Notes under the pieces: model-generated | Told to the model about the DNA's origin: nothing | The model's database searches: none | Seen by the model: only the letters and a program-made list of their open reading frames with translations | Assembly (NCBI RefSeq): GCF_000315625.1 | Contig: NW_005434593.1 | Coordinates: forward strand, 343,657-407,656 | Direction of reading: 5' to 3' | Source of the DNA: Guillardia theta CCMP2712 | Lineage: Eukaryota > Protista > Cryptophyta | DNA: 64,000 nt | Part shown: positions 24,995 through 43,625 of the stretch, piece by piece | How the letters are laid out: each line of letters begins with the position of its first letter | Position numbering within the stretch: position 1 is the stretch's first letter | Translations under genes and position numbers: made by a program

Positions 24995-26409
24995 ATGAGT
25001 ATGAAGCAACTTCTGGGCTTCTGTTTGATCTCTGTGCTACTGCTGCCATGTAGTTTCTGCTTTCCTCTTGCCGCAAGGGGTGGGATCTTTGCTATGAGGA
25101 ATTTCAAACTAAGGCATGGTGCAAACAAAGTCTCAACCAGTCGCAGCGGACTCTCCGCACTGAGATCCAAGTTTGAGTTCTATGAAGTGCAGCAGAGCAG
25201 ACAGTACAACATCGCTAAGATCCAGCAGGGTTACTACGTGACAGATGCCGACGGTCAGGTCCCTCTAGAAAACGTGCTTGCGCAGAAATTCAAGAGCTCG
25301 ACGAGGGCGGCAGATGACATGACAGCGATCGAGAAAGACATGGGACTTGACGACTTCGTTGCGCTTCAATCAGAGTATCCAAAGCCAAAATATCTGCCAT
25401 CCCTCGCGGCGAATGATCCGATCGTTCAGGCCATTACGAACAAGTGTGGGGCAGGACAAGTCTTGTCGTTCCACCTGCTGGACAAACGATGGAATGGGAA
25501 CTATATCATGCGATATGCAACATCCGATGGCGATCTGTTTGTGAAGCTGAATCACGAGGAGAACAAGTCTGTCTTCGTTGCGGAGGCGGTCGGTCTCACA
25601 TCGCTCCTCAAGTCAGGAGCTGTCCGTGCCCCGAAACCACTGCATGTCGGAGAAATCCATGGAGGAGAGGATGGGAGAGGCTCGTTCTTGATCACCGAGT
25701 TCCTGGAGCTGTCTCCCTTTGGAAGCATGACCACAACTAATCAAAGGATCCTCGGAGAGCAGATCGCCAGGCTTCACACTAGCGGAAATCTTGACGACAT
25801 TCACAAGGGACGGTTCGGGTTCATGGTGAACAACTTTCATTCCCGTACGCCTCTTGACAACACTTGGAGCTCCACGTGGGTTGAATTCTTCACTCGAAGA
25901 TTGACGTCGCAACTTGGCATGCTGCAGAAGGAACAGGTTTCTCGATCTTGCTACACTCGATCTTGCTACATGATGAGTTCTGACTTTGTACTCTTTAGGA
26001 TTGGAGACCTTTCTTCAACGTGAAGAATCAAACCTTTGTCAGCCTTCTATCACGGGTCATCGACCAACTTCCACATGATTTTAACAAGCTGGCCATCACA
26101 CCTTCGCTCTTGCACGGTGATTTGTGGATCGGGAATGCGGGTGCCACAACCGACGGTCCTGTCCTCTTCGATCCAGCCTGTTTCTTTGGTCACTCGGAGT
26201 TCGATCTTGCAATCATGAAGATCTTCGGGGGATTCTCCGACGAGTTCTTCCAGGCATACTATGAAATCTTGCCACAAGAAGAGGGTTTCGAGCAGCGAGA
26301 GCGATACTACCTGCTCTACAACTATCTGAATCAGCTGAACCTGTTCGGAGACGAGAAAGTCCTTGTGAAATGCATCAGTGTAATGCAAGAGATCTTGCAG
26401 GGAGATTAG
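24995..26409 (+). CDS. Fructosamine/ketosamine-3-kinase family protein, probably plastid-targeted
   Basis: Motifs FVKLN, FVAEAVGLTSL, PKPLHVG, GRFGF, PSLLHGDLWIGN, FDPACFFGHSEFDLA, YNYLNQLNLFG. One intron at about 25937-25999. N-terminal signal peptide ending ...SFC|F followed by an S/R/K-rich transit-like segment. Confidence 0.9.
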
Positions 26410-27593: not shown

Positions 27594-28219
27594 ATGTCGC
27601 GCAAGTCGCGTTCTGCAGGAGGAATCAGAGAGGAGGTGAGAGGATGGCGGATAACTTCTGCTCCTGGAGCTCTTGGGTGAGTTGGTAGGATTGAGATTGA
27701 AAGCATTCCAGTAACTCGATATGATTGACAGCGTCGTCTATGACTTCCTGCCCATCGATTTCAATCTTCTCCTCGAGGAGCACGCTAACTGCGAGGAAGG
27801 CAAGACATTAGCGATGCTAGAGGTGATGTCGATCACAATCACAATGCACCTTATAATGCTGCTGCAAAAGTGTAATATCGGTTGGTGCTACTTGAATGGT
27901 CGAGGGTGTCCCAGGGATTACAAAGAAGCTACCAAGTGGTTTTCGAAGCATCCCAAGCAAAACTCAAGTGCAGGAAGTCAATACAACATGGGGTGAGAAC
28001 ATACTGATAGAACACTGAGATATCCTACTATCAAGCTCCAACTTACGCGTATCTTCTGGCAGTGTTATGTACTCGTTCGCTCTTGGGGTTGATAAGTTGG
28101 AGCGGCAAGCGTCGGAGGCTTTTGGATACTACAACAAGCTCAGAGTGCAAGAGCGACAGATGTATGAGATATGCAACTCAGGAGCCAAAGCCCTAGATCC
28201 GAGCTATACCACTAACTGA
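27594..28219 (+). CDS. Small Sel1-like repeat protein
   Basis: Spliced CNIGWCYLNGRGCPRDYKEATKWFSK and SQYNMGVMYSFALGVDK...AFGYYNK match the Sel1 repeat consensus. Several short introns. Confidence 0.75.
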
Positions 28220-28395
28220 CATGTGAAACAATTATCTTACTGTATGAAACGAAACTTAATCACTAAAACCTATGATGTGATATGATGCTTGAGATAAATG
28301 TTGATAGTTTCAGCATCATTCCCTCGCGCCCATTCATCAGCGAGTTTAGATCTCATCAATCATTTATTTACACTTGTACATGCTGGATAATCAAT

Positions 28396-30530
28396 TCAAA
28401 CTTCTTCCCTGATCCACTTGAGAAAAACATCGAGGCAATACTTCCCTACTGGGTGGATGCAGGGCCAGAAAACGAATATCAAGAGTGCAGTTATCAAGAC
28501 TATGATCACTTCACGAACTGCGTTCGCCCCTTGAGCTCCTTTGCCGGTGTAAGAGCAAGGGTAGTCGTTGCGGCATCCCATGGATATGCAGAGATTCAGC
28601 AGACCATCATTGTTGGAGTCCTTGACAGAGTAAGTCCACGGACCTGCGACCCCGATAGACTGGAAGCTGCGAGAGTAAAATTATTCATTGCTGAAAGACT
28701 TAGCCCCAGACGTTCGCACCTGCACATGGTGTTGTAGATGTCCATGCAGTAGCTGCAGCATAAGGGAAAGATGTTGAGCTCGTTTATGAAGTCCACGGGT
28801 GGGTTGGTCGAGTTGGCGCAATCGCTGTCTTGTTGGCACTGAGAAATCAACCTATGACCCATGTCAAACAGATGTATCAAACAGCTGTTGGCGCCGTTGT
28901 GCTTCAAGTCGCAGCGGCTTTCTGACCTTCTAGTGCAACAATCTCTGTGAGCATATTCTTCAATTTGTGAGGTATGGTTGATGAATGTCTGCAGGGCAGG
29001 ACATCTTGAATCGCTTGCAAGGTTCTGAAATGATCGCCAGAATGTGACTCATAAGGGACTTCAAGGGGAACAAGATTGCCTGCAAAGCGAGCGAACAGCA
29101 ACATATGTCCGAGCATTCCGGCTCTTGGAAAAGGTTTTGACAGTCACAGCGACTTCGGACGGCGGTGTCAGAACGTATGTAGCCTTCCTGTCTTGATGAT
29201 CAGACTTTCAACAGGTGCTGACTCCAAACATCTCACACAGCAATCAGGCAGAAGAGCTCGTCTTTGCCTCAGCGAATAGGAAAAACCATAACGCCCGGAA
29301 ACTTCCCCGCAATGCGACTCAAAGGGGCTGCACGTCGTGAGGAAGAGAGACGGAGGGAGAGCACGAGACCTGGTGTCAAGATACTCGAAGCATTTCTTGT
29401 ACGTCAGTTCCTCGGTCGATACGACAAAATCCCAGGAGTAAGCACCAGCCTGAGTCTTCTTCCCGGCACAAACACTCCCGAAGTACTTGGCGCTGACCCC
29501 TGAAACGAAGGATCAAAGTCAGGACAGTGAGAGTCAAAGCCTTCCTGACGAGGTCGTGCAGAAACCCTTCTGCAGACGGAAAGTCTCACTTCACTGCTAC
29601 ACAGCAGCAGGCAAAGGAACCTGAATAATGCCTCCAACGTACAGACAGCCCGGAGAGGAGGAGTCTTGCGCGGTCAGGTAGTTCCGCAAAGTCGGAGGAG
29701 GCACACCAAAGGTCCAAGAGCTAATCTGATGTTGATAGAACGAGTCCCCTCCTTGCTTGATAGACACGTTGACACCACTCGTATTGCCGATCTGATACTT
29801 GCTCACATAATACGAGCCCTATCACAACAGCTCTGATTCAGCAGACACCAACCCACACTCGCATCACCGGACACTCGGTCGAGACTTGGCTGTAGATGCC
29901 GTACAGATCAATCTTGCTGGAAGCTGCGTTGCATCTGACATCACATTCACAAACCACGTCAACTCGATCAAGATTCAAAACAAAAGCGAATGAACGCACA
30001 GATCTGAGCTACAGCAAGCGTAGTTGTAAACTCCCATGGAGTCTTCTTTCTGGCCTCTGCCATGTGATTGCGTTAGCGCTGACGTCAATCTTAATTGCAT
30101 GAGACACCGAGCTTGATAGCACTGATCTGACGACACACACCCAAGGCTGATGGATCCATCTGAGTACATCTTTGCAATGCATGAAGATGTAGCGGCACAG
30201 GTCGACATCGAAGTTGACGACACTGTATAAGTGCTTCCAGTCTTGGTGACTTGTTGTACGTAACACTTCAAACATGCTGCTGGCAAGACTGTACAAAGGC
30301 ACTTGTTAGGTACCCGAGCATGAGATTACAGCGAGATTCAGTGACAGCATCCAATTGAAGAAGGCAAAGAAGACTCAATGAAAGTTGCGGAGGTTGAATC
30401 AAGGAAGGCAGGGCAAGGCGTGAACGAGAGATGGAGGAGGAGAGGAGATGTAAGAGACACGGAGGAAGAGACGAGGGTGAAAGAATCTCTTACTGGTGAG
30501 GAGGAGGAGGAGGAGATTTAGGCGCAGCAT
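28396..30530 (-). CDS. Secreted/type I membrane Cys-rich protein with N-terminal three-finger (Ly6/uPAR/toxin-like) domain
   Basis: Signal MLRLNLLLLLLTILPAAC, then LKCY...TCAATSSCIAKMY...LGCVSSDQC...YACCSSDLCN (8 Cys), further Cys-rich exons, and a C-terminal hydrophobic helix VIIVLITALLIFVFWPCI. Middle exons only partly resolved. Confidence 0.75.
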
Positions 30531-30710
30531 GGCTCCTCAGTCCACACCGACGAAATTATGAATTTTCACTATTCAGCTTTGAAATTTATTCATAATTATA
30601 TCGAATTAGAATATAACATCAATTGTAGTTCTGCATAACGTTTATAAGAATTTCAGAACTATGCACAATAAAGAGTTGCTACCGTTCTCTGCGAAAGATG
30701 ATGAGAAATC

Positions 30711-30908
30711 TCCTCCTCCTCCTCCTCCTCCTCCTCCTCCTCCTCCTCCTCCTCCTCCTCCTCCTCCTCCTCCTCCTCCTCCACCACCACCACCACCACC
30801 ATACCACAATTCCTCCCCTCTTGCTCTTTCGCTCGCACCTGACTCTATCTGCTCTTTCGTGTGAAGCTCAAGAAAATTATGATGGTTGGAAAGCGATGTG
30901 AGGAAAAA

Positions 30909-30957
<49 letters not shown>
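30711..30957. repeat. (CCT)n(CCA)n and (GGCA)n microsatellites
   Basis: Direct tandem repeats at 30711-30800 and 30911-30957. Confidence 0.9.
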
Positions 30958-30958
<1 letters not shown>

Positions 30959-31304
30959 GGGAAACGAACGAAGCAGGCAGGCAAGGGCAAGGGCTGGGGG
31001 ATGAGAAGAAACCGAAGAGAATCAGAGAATGAAGGAATAATCGAGTCAGAAAGTGAGATGACTTCGAAAGGATGCAGAAAGACATGAAAGATGGGGAGGA
31101 GGGAGGTGAAGACTCAGTCACAGATAGTCGAGCCATGAGCGTCTTCAAGACTCTCCGACAGTCTATGGAGCCTCATTGTCCCGACCAGCTCTATGAAGCC
31201 TGTTAAACTAGCTCTTGCGCTGTGCATCGATCAGTCACATGCGTCCCAGTGAAGCTGACAGAGCGAAGGGGCTAGGAAGACTGTATTGCAGTGCTATAGC
31301 TGAT

Positions 31305-37072: not shown

Positions 37073-40000
37073 CTAGGAGGAGCGGCAAGGGGAAGAAGCT
37101 TGAGCTAGCCTTAGAGACTCGGGCGACAAGGAAGGAAAGGAAGATGGAGGGAGGACATGGAGACAGGACGATCGCGAGGGAGCGAGGAGCAGGAGGAGAA
37201 GAGGAGTGGGGGGAGGGGAAGCATGTTTCTGCAGATAATTACTTTGTTGTATATCACATGCTTCTCAGCCTCTTGTGCTCTCGCTCATTCTACCTCACCG
37301 CTTGCTCGCATCGCGCGAAGGAAGCTTCCGCTGCGGTTGGCCAACGACCTTCTTGTCCTTCATCATCGATCTGCAGCGACAATCAGCACAGGCAACAACG
37401 AGGAGGAGGAGGAGGAGGACGAGGAGGAGGACGAGGAGGAGGAGGACGAGGAGGAGACCTGTCGGCAGCCGTCTCGCTCTTGGCCGACGTGGGGCGACGG
37501 GAGGAGGAGCGGACGCTGCTGGCCAGTGCGGAGAGGGAGAGGGCGGAGGAGTCAGACTCCTCCGAGGCCAGCGAGGACAAGGACTCCTCCGAGTTGCAGG
37601 CGGAGATCTGACCCGCTCCCTCTGCCGTGCAGGAGACATGGCGCATTGCCTGCTCGACAGGTCAGTGACTTCACTCACCTCCTCCTCCTCCTCCTCCTCC
37701 TCGCGAGCTCACCTTTCCCAGCTCGCAGGAGGAGACCATGCTGGCGAAGCGAAGGGTGCAGAGGGTCTCGTGGGAGGAGGTCTCGATGGGGGAGCAGTTG
37801 GCGATGAGGAGCGCCTTGCCGTCGCCGGAGAGGCAGGGCTGGAGGAGGAAGGTGAGCTTCGAGTTCCTGTAGGGCACGTGCGGCGACTTCTTGGAGAGGG
37901 CAACGAAGACGTCGGAGAGGGCGGAGAGCGACTTGTTGATCGCCTGCGTCTCCTTCAGCCTCTCCCCCGTCGCGTGCGACTTGGCCAGCCTCTCCGACCC
38001 CGCCAGGTCCACCAGGTGGAGGGTCCCGTGCAGGGCCTGCTGCTGGCCCCCGACTCCCGCCTTCCTGCCGGTGATGCGCATGGAGAAGACCGTGTGGCTC
38101 CTCGAGGATCGCTCGTTCATGTCCGTCTTGGCGATGCTCTTGTTCCTCTCCGCCTCCGCCATCATCTCCTCCACGTCCTCCATCGTCCTCACCCTCCTGT
38201 AGATCAGGTCCGACACGTCGTGCCGCCCGTTCTCTCCCAGCGTGATCGTGTACTTCTTCCCCTCCCGCTCCTCCTCCGCACACAGCAGGTCCCTGACGTG
38301 CTCCTGGTAGATCTCGAGGAACGACGCCTCCAGCTGGTACTCCCACCCGCTCTCTCGCATCCCCTCCACCCCTCCCAGGATCTGACCCATCGACCTGGGG
38401 ATGATGCCCTGGTCCTCCCTTGACCCGAACATCGTGTGCGTCTTCCCGGACCCGGTCTGGCCGTAGGCGAACAGCGACACGTTGTACCCGTCCAGCGCGC
38501 TCTGCACAAACTGAGAGACTTCGGAGAAGACGTCCTCTTGCGAGCTCATGGCGGGGAACACCCGGTCGAACCGGAAGCCGTTGGACTGGCCGTTGTGCGG
38601 CACCATCACCGTCCCCAGCTCCTCGTCCACTCCCACCACGCTCCTCTCCGAGCTCGGCCGGACCCTCGCAAACACTCGGATGTTCCCCTTCAGCTCCTGC
38701 AGCTCGTTGTGCAGCCGCCGCCGCAGCCCCTCGGCCTTGGCGAGCTTTTGCTTCAGGTCCAGCACCTGCTCCTTGAGCGACGTCACCAGCGCCTTCTGCG
38801 CGTCCGCGTCCTCCTCCGCCGCCTGCATGCGGCTCTGGGCACTGGCTCGCTCGCTCTCGAGGGTCATGAGCTTGCTCAGCTGGTCAGCGATCTTTGCGGG
38901 CGTGTTGCAGACGGTCTTGTACGTGCGGAACTCTGCCTCCAGCACTGCAAGCTTCTCCATGCTGTCCGCCTTCGCTCTCCCCAGCTCCTCCAGCTTGCTC
39001 GCCGACTCTGCCTGCTCCACCTTCGAGGTCTCGAGCTCCACCTGAGCCTTCTGGAGCTGAGACTGGAGCTCCTGTGCCTTCGCCTCCTGCTCTGAGAGAG
39101 AGGTCTTGAGCTTGTCCATGTCTCGCTTCATCTGAGTCCTCTCCTCCTTCAGCCTACACGGTGCTTGTCAGACTCTTCCCCCTCCCCCTCCCCCTCCCCC
39201 TCATCCCCCGAACGCTCACCTGCTGAGGTCCTCCAGGAGGGAGTCTCGCTCAGCTGCCAGCTCCTTCGCTCGGCCCACCTGCATGTCCTGAGCCTGCGCC
39301 ACCGTCTTCATCGCGTCTCGGATCTGCGCGTCCTTGTCGTCGAGCCGGGCCTGCATCTCCTTCAGCTGGGACAGGTTCAGGTCCCTCTCAGCTGTCAGCC
39401 TCGCCATCTCTGCCCTCGTCTCCTCTCTCTCCGCGCTCCTCTTGTCCAGCTCTGCCCTCCTGCCCTCCAGCTGCTGTTGGCAGAGCTCGATCTGCGCCCT
39501 GCTGCTTGCCAGCTGCTCTTCGTAGGACTGGATCCTGCTAGAGAGCGAGCTCTTCTCCTCTCTCGCCTTCTCCAGCGCCGCCTCCATCTCCGACATCTTC
39601 GCCTTCATGCCCTCCATGCTCGAGTCCCTGCTCTGGCAAGTCTCCTGCAGCCTGGACTCCAGCTCGGAGACCCTCCGCTCCCTCTCCTGCATCTCGAGCC
39701 TCATGTTCGAGAGCTTGTCCTTGCTCTCCTCGTTGACCTGCGAGATCTTCTCCTCCAGCTCGCTGCACTTTCTCTCGAGCTCGGCGGCCCTGGCCAGCAG
39801 CTGCTGCTTTTCCTCCACCATCCTCTCCTTCTCGTACTCTAGAGTCGCGATCCTCCTCTGGTTCTCCTCGTACGCCGCATCGCGGGTGGAGCAGCTCATG
39901 TGCACCTGGGACCGGAGGTCCTCGACCTCCTTGTCTCTCTGCTGGGCTCTCGCCTCCAACTTCTGCACCTCCGCCGTCCTGGACTCCAGCTGGGACTGGC

Positions 40001-42815: not shown

Positions 42816-43625
42816 ATGCGAGGGCCAGCGGCGTTTGTCGTTGCCGTCGTGATGGCGACGGGAGCACGAGGAGGTGATGAGAGCTGAAGTGATGATAATG
42901 ATAAGACTCCTTGAACCTGCTCCTCATGCCTGACTGTGTTTGAGTGTTCTGTCTCTTGTCGCAAGGACTAGTTTAAGTTGTCTCTTTTTGTACCTGCTTG
43001 CCTCACTGCAGCTGTTCTGAGATGATCATGTCAAGCGCCATTACTTGTCAGCTCGTGTAAACTTGCTTCAGTTCACGGATTGAAGTGCTACCAGCCATCA
43101 AAGACTGTGGCTCTCCAAGACAAGATTAACCTTGATGCGCTAGCTGTACCGCCTTCTTGGCCGTCACTAGATACCTATCCCACAGGGTTGATAGAGCATG
43201 ATTGCAGTTCGCTGAAGGAAGAGCAGGATTGGGGCACAGGTGGCTTCTGTCTCAAGATTGTGATGCGCAACGCATCGATCCAGCGGGACGTTGCCACAGG
43301 TTCTTGCTATCGGTCGTTGCTGGTGGGTTACAGGTCGGATCAGATCGGTGGACTTTCTGACGCTGCTTGCAAGGTGTTGAGCGGAATTCAATGTGATTCC
43401 AACGGCAAGACCGGTCAGGCATATTCCATTCTCACCAATCAGACTTTCACTTACTACTGTTGCACCGGGAATATGTGAGACAGCAAGACTACACATGCTT
43501 CTTCTGACTCACTGATTGGAAGGTGCAACTCATCACCAAGACGTGCATTGGGTTCCTTCACGACTCTTGCAACATGTCTCCTTTCCTGCTTCTTGTTTGT
43601 ATCTAGAATGACTTCAATCTTATGA
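42816..43625 (+). CDS. Putative GPI-anchored three-finger/Ly6(quiver)-like protein
   Basis: Exons 42816-42873, 43072-43474 and 43523-43625 give MRGPAAFVVAVVMATGARGVHG|LKCY...C...FCLK...GSC...YYCCTGNMCN followed by SSPRRALGSFTTLATCLLSCFLFVSRMTSIL* (small residues then hydrophobic tail, GPI-signal-like). Confidence 0.78.

Follow-up and report, generated by a model that had tools for sequence, protein, structure and literature searches.

Among the targets and processes under the control of LU (Ly6/uPAR/three-finger) proteins are complement, nicotinic receptors, TGF-beta signalling, fertilisation, and lipolysis. The toxins of elapid snakes also derive from three-finger (LU) proteins. The LU domain is defined as a unit of 60 to 90 residues carrying ten ancestral cysteines, which pair 1-5, 2-3, 4-6, 7-8, and 9-10 (PMC6600238). 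An invariant asparagine follows the last of these cysteines, and many LU domains, among them most snake toxins, no longer have the 2-3 pair (PMC6600238). In animal LU genes, a signal-peptide exon is followed by two domain exons that are flanked by phase-1 introns (PMC6600238). In an HMM survey from 2026, LU proteins turned up in every animal phylum but were absent from the 1,500 fungal, 169 plant, and 2 choanoflagellate genomes examined, and the fold has been proposed to arise with the transition to animal multicellularity (PMC13719153).

Here we describe gene 1, which lies in a 64,000-nucleotide stretch of the genome of the cryptophyte alga Guillardia theta (the window, to which all positions refer; 343657-407656 of contig NW_005434593.1) and encodes an N-terminal 76-residue module that is probably an LU-type domain on a membrane protein outside animals. 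An earlier note on this DNA, made from the sequence alone, had pointed out the module and had called the family one described essentially from Metazoa, which is fair given the absence from fungal, plant, and choanoflagellate genomes in the 2026 survey (PMC13719153). Searches of the full-text literature turned up no account of LU domains from any protist, cryptophytes included. The fold type is familiar and the lineage is unexpected.

Structure and expression of gene 1

The region from 27800 to 30900 was analysed using Logan transcript contigs from three studies (X1, X2, and X4) and raw RNA reads (X18). Gene 1 is on the minus strand and is interrupted by eleven short introns of 42 to 205 nt. 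Eleven exon joints are present in the transcript contigs, and the ORF that starts with the ATG at 30530 encodes 464 amino acids once spliced. A protein from the MMETSP collection (P0001) begins at an internal Met, comes from a transcript identical to gene 1, and has introns 2 and 3 spliced. In the JGI transcript contig L018, introns 1 and 2 have been removed and intron 3 is still present, and the 380-aa product of L018 (P0004) is identical over 372 aa to residues 93 to 464 of the gene 1 protein. The features of the gene are as follows.

30494-30530, minus strand: exon 1, which encodes most of the signal peptide from the start codon (30530-30528) onward and ends in phase 1 (from joints and translation)
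30289-30493, minus strand: intron 1, 205 nt, GT..AG, phase 1, separating the signal peptide from the module; spliced in X1, X2, X4, and L018
30108-30288, minus strand: exon 2, encoding the last part of the signal peptide (...LPAAC) and residues 1-54 of the module (LKCY...CYQA), comprising predicted fingers I and II and cysteines 1-5
30057-30107, minus strand: intron 2, 51 nt, GT..AG, phase 2, joint 30056/30108; spliced in P0001 and L018
30000-30056, minus strand: exon 3, 57 nt (a multiple of 3), with predicted finger III and the CC pair (GQKEDS...YACCSSD)
29935-29999, minus strand: intron 3, 65 nt, GT..AG, phase 2, directly ahead of the final Cys-Asn; removed in P0001 and still present in L018/P0004
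29928-30271, minus strand: stretch encoding the 76-residue module (precursor residues Leu19-Asn94), split by introns 2 and 3
28396-29934, minus strand: rest of the coding region, with the Cys-rich ectodomain, the TM helix, the 22-aa tail, and the stop codon in the last exon (from joints and P0004)
29867-29934, 29621-29817, 29544-29569, 29370-29498, 29236-29327, 29080-29186, 28925-29024, 28720-28849, and 28396-28666, minus strand: downstream exons
29499-29543, minus strand: 45-nt non-canonical intron, best read as GA..AG, with a 5-nt direct repeat (TCAGG) on its flanks
28456-28509, minus strand: predicted TM helix, V428-I445; the Kyte-Doolittle maximum of the protein is at residues 423-447

The first three introns had been proposed in the earlier note from the genomic letters, and all three are removed in contigs of X1, X2, and X4, in each of which the joints 30288/30494, 30056/30108, and 29934/30000 are found. 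All three are of the GT..AG type on the minus strand. The transcript joints agree exactly with the coordinates that had been given for the first and third introns (30289-30493 and 29935-29999), whereas the second, although spliced as proposed, lies at 30057-30107 rather than at "about 30105-30055", a displacement of 2 nt. The joining of CCSSDL to CN through removal of intron 3, on which the predicted C terminus of the module depended, is seen in the contigs of X1, X2, and X4 and also in P0001. Gene 1 is a genuine nuclear gene of the alga and is expressed.

Some transcripts and genomic features depart from this simple picture. Intron 1 is retained in one low-depth transcript contig. Because intron 2 is open in frame when retained, a genomic ORF (29978-30286) runs through it. 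In this unspliced ORF, the first bases of intron 3 encode a Cys, such that the translation reads ...CCSSDLC and contains all eight cysteines plus one extra. The intron at 29025-29079 (minus strand, 55 nt) has GC..AG ends, and its removal is seen in three transcript contigs. Immediately upstream of the 5′ end of gene 1, positions 30700-30800 and ~30910-30960 are occupied by long microsatellites of the (GGA)n and (GCCT)n types, and reads seem to be cut at 30703-30810.

The 45-nt element at 29499-29543 has ends that are neither GT-AG, GC-AG, nor AT-AC. It is removed in X1, X4, and L018/P0004 and is retained in X2 and P0001. Its removal yields the 464-aa membrane form, and its retention brings in a stop codon that yields a 191-aa form without the TM helix. 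This variation could reflect non-canonical splicing, an indel polymorphism, or template switching by reverse transcriptase. Retention would give rise to a secreted 191-aa form with the identical three-finger-like module. Pairs of membrane and secreted forms are known for animal LU proteins, and the pair proposed for gene 1, here predicted from transcripts, would resemble them.

The gene 1 protein begins with a signal peptide (residues 1-18) in which A-x-C precedes the cut, and cleavage probably occurs after Cys18. The module, residues 19-94, lies directly behind the signal peptide. It is followed by a region of ~330 aa (residues 95-440) that contains 26 further cysteines and four N-x-S/T sites. 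Several CC and CCC clusters occur among these 26 cysteines, in the part encoded by 28396-29866 (minus strand). The ~330-aa region matches nothing in Pfam and no cluster of the ESM Atlas, and it may therefore represent an undescribed Cys-rich domain. The tail after the TM helix is 22 aa long. P0004, which includes this cytoplasmic tail, has no match in Pfam, and no Ser/Thr kinase domain follows the TM helix. The rest of the ectodomain was also checked for a second LU module, and neither a CCxxxxCN signature nor a Pfam match was found.

The description in the earlier note of a larger Cys-rich ectodomain with a C-terminal TM helix is borne out by the 26 extra cysteines in residues 95-440 and by the hydrophobic stretch V428-W442. 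Likewise, the term "receptor-like" is apt, as the signal peptide, ectodomain, single TM helix, and short tail correspond to a type I membrane layout. The architecture, in which a probable LU module is combined with a novel Cys-rich region and a TM helix in a protein with no kinase and no GPI anchor, is new. The gene 1 product would be a 464-aa type I membrane glycoprotein whose module is held, presumably at the cell surface, on a long Cys-rich, N-glycosylated stalk with a single TM helix. The 22-residue tail carries no enzymatic signalling domain. By analogy with every characterised LU domain, the role of the module would most likely be extracellular protein binding.

The 76-residue module and its likeness to three-finger domains

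The spliced translation of the mature N terminus is exactly the 76-residue string that had been derived in the earlier note. It contains exactly eight cysteines in the order reported there, ending in CCSSDLCN, and its Asn codon ends at 29928, the position at which that note had placed the start of the feature. The cysteines occupy module positions 3, 25, 31, 45, 51, 69, 70, and 75 (spacings 21-5-13-5-17-0-4), and Asn comes next. The length of 76 residues falls inside the range of 60 to 90 that defines LU domains (PMC6600238), an Asn stands right after the last Cys, and the spacing of the eight cysteines fits LU positions 1, 4, 5, 6, 7, 8, 9, and 10, with the 2-3 pair absent. The disulfides predicted from this correspondence would be Cys3-Cys31, Cys25-Cys45, Cys51-Cys69, and Cys70-Cys75 (module numbering). 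The module would then be the eight-Cys version of the LU domain without the loop-I disulfide, as in short-chain toxins, and would have the shape of a small core from which three beta-hairpin "fingers" protrude. As in animal LU genes, a phase-1 intron follows the signal-peptide exon of gene 1. The module itself is divided among three exons by two phase-2 introns, which are at positions unlike those of animal LU genes.

When the spliced module was scanned against Pfam, only five families were matched at E < 10, with end-to-end alignments, and apart from DUF7622 all of them are three-finger families. These are DUF7622 (E 0.008), UPAR_LY6 (PF00021; E 0.0086, 17.0 bits versus a gathering cut-off of 24.8), Toxin_TOLIP (PF00087; E 0.014, 16.6 bits versus 21.2, profile positions 1-72 of 72), CD59 (PF25152; E 0.26, 11.4 bits versus 33.9), and Activin_recp (PF01064; E 0.36, 12.3 bits versus 20.9, profile positions 2-78 of 79). 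All five scores are under the curated gathering cut-offs, and the E values near 0.01 apply per protein, are not significant proteome-wide, and were obtained with a sequence chosen for its motif. The P0001 fragment, which is without finger I, matches the same five families, and the unspliced ORF matches Activin_recp only.

Two observations bear on the source of these matches. The translated segment L018:50-280 differs from the true module only at the first residue (Met for Leu) and the last (Val for Asn), and it loses 4.5 to 5 bits in Pfam, which indicates that the signature residues Leu1 and the final Asn carry weight in the match. The other Cys-rich parts of the gene 1 protein (seven exon peptides and P0004) have no Pfam match whatever, and thus Cys-richness alone is not the source of the Ly6 and toxin matches of the module. 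The ESM Atlas neighbours of the module belong exclusively to three-finger families, led by cobra cytotoxin (0.85) and SLURP1 (0.83) and followed by PATE, activin receptor, TGFBR2, and CD59, where scores below 0.9 are to be taken as a lead only and ten matches within the same clan arise for a third of shuffled proteins.

Two targets were modelled with AlphaFold2, each from a 2-row alignment that holds no evolutionary information. Model 1, made from the unspliced ORF, has a pLDDT of 63.6 and shows a disordered intron insert with three hairpins around it. Model 2, made from L018:50-280 with intron 2 spliced, has a pLDDT of 66.5. In an exhaustive structural comparison of model 2 with 48,161 PDB representatives, ranks 1 to 36 are all three-finger proteins. 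Foldseek with the same model returned three-finger proteins as 49 of the top 50 matches, with target-normalised TM scores of at most 0.65 and every E value above 0.1. Model 1 gave an identical ranking with lower Z scores, its use in the ESM Atlas fold search gave mixed, uninformative matches, and a search of a viral fold library found nothing. The module is therefore predicted to adopt a three-finger fold, from models of moderate confidence that place three-finger proteins on top. Because AlphaFold2 may recall the fold from the Cys motif, the models do not count as evidence separate from the sequence signature, which they may simply echo. The reading of the module in the earlier note as a three-finger or Ly6-type domain holds to the extent that the LU signature, Pfam, ESM, and the models agree, and it is weakened by scores below the cut-offs and by the moderate pLDDT.

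Relatives and origin of the module

A module-profile search against 1.84 billion representative proteins yielded no relative at E < 0.001. The two proteins that it returned are gene 1 itself (P0001) and a repetitive artefact (P0002). Only chance-level matches were obtained in a sequence search of the PDB (ASFV C122R, a plant protease inhibitor, and the BMPR2 tail CC..DLCN at E 2-4). When the alga's own genome (87.1 Mb, 669 contigs) was searched, the queries (the ORF and the profile of the module, P0001, and the last exon) recovered gene 1 only and no paralog; weak matches at four further loci (L004-L006 and L013) have no LU pattern. A six-frame search of the genome with PF00021 gave no match, gene 1 included, because the introns split the domain, and the one match to PF00087 (L011) is spurious and falls in a MORN-repeat-like ORF. 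Metagenome scans for contigs of Hanusia or other orthologues found none.

The sole orthologue found is a protein of Hanusia phi (P0003, from EukProt), which is 60-67% identical to the gene 1 protein downstream of the module. Its N terminus (residues 1-25) aligns with finger II with a score of 30, compared to 18.4±3.5 for shuffled sequences, and 7 of 2000 shuffles reach that score. After finger II, the protein proceeds straight to R-CNAAS, as if the in-frame 57-nt exon 3 had been skipped or were absent, and Cys2, Cys4, Cys5, and the CC pair are missing from the region aligned with the module. The ORF retains several other introns, and P0003 may therefore derive from an unprocessed or aberrant transcript. 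Conservation of the Cys framework in the sister genus Hanusia is not borne out by P0003 as available.

A second gene in the window resembles gene 1 in part.

42816-43625, plus strand: gene 2, a 187-aa model with a signal peptide, LKCY...YYCCTGNM-CN, and a hydrophobic GPI-like tail

Both genes contain LKCY...CCxxxxCN, and in both, one intron follows the signal peptide in phase 1 and another precedes the final CN in phase 2. The gene 2 model has nine cysteines at non-canonical spacing and no Pfam match, and it has a paralog (80% identical) on another contig (C19:701467-701744). The intron before CN that is shared by genes 1 and 2 is suggestive of what may be a diverged local family. The protein family envisaged in the earlier note stands on slender grounds, as gene 1 has no sequence paralog in the genome and gene 2 shares the motif and intron phases but not the Cys spacing. 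P0003, as available, is without most of the framework.

On this evidence, we consider the odds to be reasonably good that the module is an LU-type three-finger domain. Given an LU fold, the choice between homology and convergence is roughly even and slightly favours homology. The slight lean to shared ancestry comes from the fact that the likeness includes residues other than Cys, namely LxCY, Y-x-CC-x2-D-L-C-N, and the invariant Asn. The LU domain would in that case not be an animal invention, and a true homologue would reside on a cryptophyte surface protein, either much older than Metazoa but diverged beyond detection by sequence or anciently transferred between animals and cryptophytes, and possibly as one of a small LU-like set sharing the pre-CN intron. 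This fuller proposal is a tentative one, and we rate its chances as short of even.

A small disulfide-rich, three-hairpin domain could instead have originated independently in the Guillardia lineage, with CCxxxxCN and LxCY arising from structural constraints. Such a convergent look-alike is consistent with the lack of a significant sequence relative among the 1.84 billion representatives or in the PDB, with the absence of any report outside Metazoa (PMC13719153), and with the fast evolution of gene 1, which is no more than 60-67% identical to its counterpart in the sister genus. The positions and phases of the internal introns, with phase 2 before the final CN, are also unlike the two-exon layout of animals. 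However, the likeness to LU domains reaches Leu1, Tyr4, Tyr-x-CC, and Asp-Leu-Cys-Asn, all of which add measurable Pfam score, and the Cys spacing matches the LU consensus over the whole domain. We regard an independent origin as somewhat unlikely.

The sub-threshold Pfam scores are also compatible with a module that is not a three-finger domain at all. A lineage-specific Cys-rich N terminus could match a short LU motif by chance, and the AlphaFold2 models would then be hallucinations triggered by the motif, consistent with a pLDDT of ~64-66 from a 2-row alignment and with Foldseek E values above 0.1. The Hanusia phi ORF, without most of the framework, points in the same direction. We judge a chance resemblance of this kind to be improbable.

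Contamination of the assembly with animal DNA, or the acquisition of a Ly6 or toxin gene from an animal in very recent times, would account for a domain type otherwise known from animals, and a plant "hit" elsewhere has been ascribed to insect contamination (PMC13719153), but this explanation is extremely improbable. Gene 1 lies inside a contig covering at least this 64-kb window and has ordinary eukaryotic genes around it, among them a fructosamine-kinase-like ORF (24995-26020) and a kinesin (37674-39131). It has eleven short introns in a window whose composition and short introns are those of a eukaryotic nuclear genome, and it is transcribed in same-organism runs of several studies and in the MMETSP and JGI transcriptomes. 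It has an orthologue in Hanusia phi and no animal protein at E < 0.001, and nothing was flagged as resembling human sequence. The earlier note had called contamination unlikely, and the contig neighbours, introns, transcripts, and orthologue bring it close to refuted.

If the module is a genuine LU domain in a cryptophyte, its existence would either overturn the dating of the fold to multicellularity or document a rare transfer between animals and protists, and it would provide a single-celled system in which to ask what an LU domain binds. If it is convergent, the module would be a clean case of one disulfide knot and signature that evolved twice. HMM thresholds evidently miss such domains, and structure-based screens of protist proteomes are therefore worthwhile.

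Comparison with known three-finger systems

Single-domain Ly6/uPAR proteins, such as CD59, PSCA, Lynx, SLURP, GPIHBP1, and Prod1, have ten cysteines, whereas the gene 1 module has eight, with the loop-I pair missing. These proteins are GPI-anchored or are secreted alone, and the module is instead fused to a Cys-rich region of ~330 aa, a TM helix, and a short tail. Gene 1 also differs from them in that the internal introns of its module are elsewhere, its Pfam scores are sub-cut-off, and its host is a cryptophyte alga.

The short-chain three-finger snake toxins and cytotoxins have the same eight-Cys framework as the module, and their family profile (PF00087) is aligned over its full 72 positions. 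Target-normalised TM scores from Foldseek are 0.63 to 0.64 for erabutoxins and 0.65 for a homodimeric neurotoxin. In contrast, finger I of the module, in which 21 residues separate Cys1 from Cys2, is much longer than that of the toxins, and finger III also exceeds theirs in length. Snake toxins are secreted, stand-alone proteins of ~60 to 75 aa from the venom gland, whereas the module forms the N terminus of a 464-aa membrane protein or of the 191-aa isoform. The likeness to these toxins is no sign that the gene 1 module is toxic.

The receptors for TGF-beta, activin, and BMP are membrane proteins of type I whose N-terminal ectodomain has the three-finger fold, a layout like that of gene 1, for which the fold is predicted. 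The C-terminal signature of the BMPR2 domain (...CCSTDLCN) is almost the same as that of the module (...CCSSDLCN), and the alignment with PF01064 is full-length, at E 0.36-4. The TGF-beta receptors carry a Ser/Thr kinase, whereas the gene 1 protein ends in a 22-residue tail and has a long Cys-rich region between its module and the membrane.
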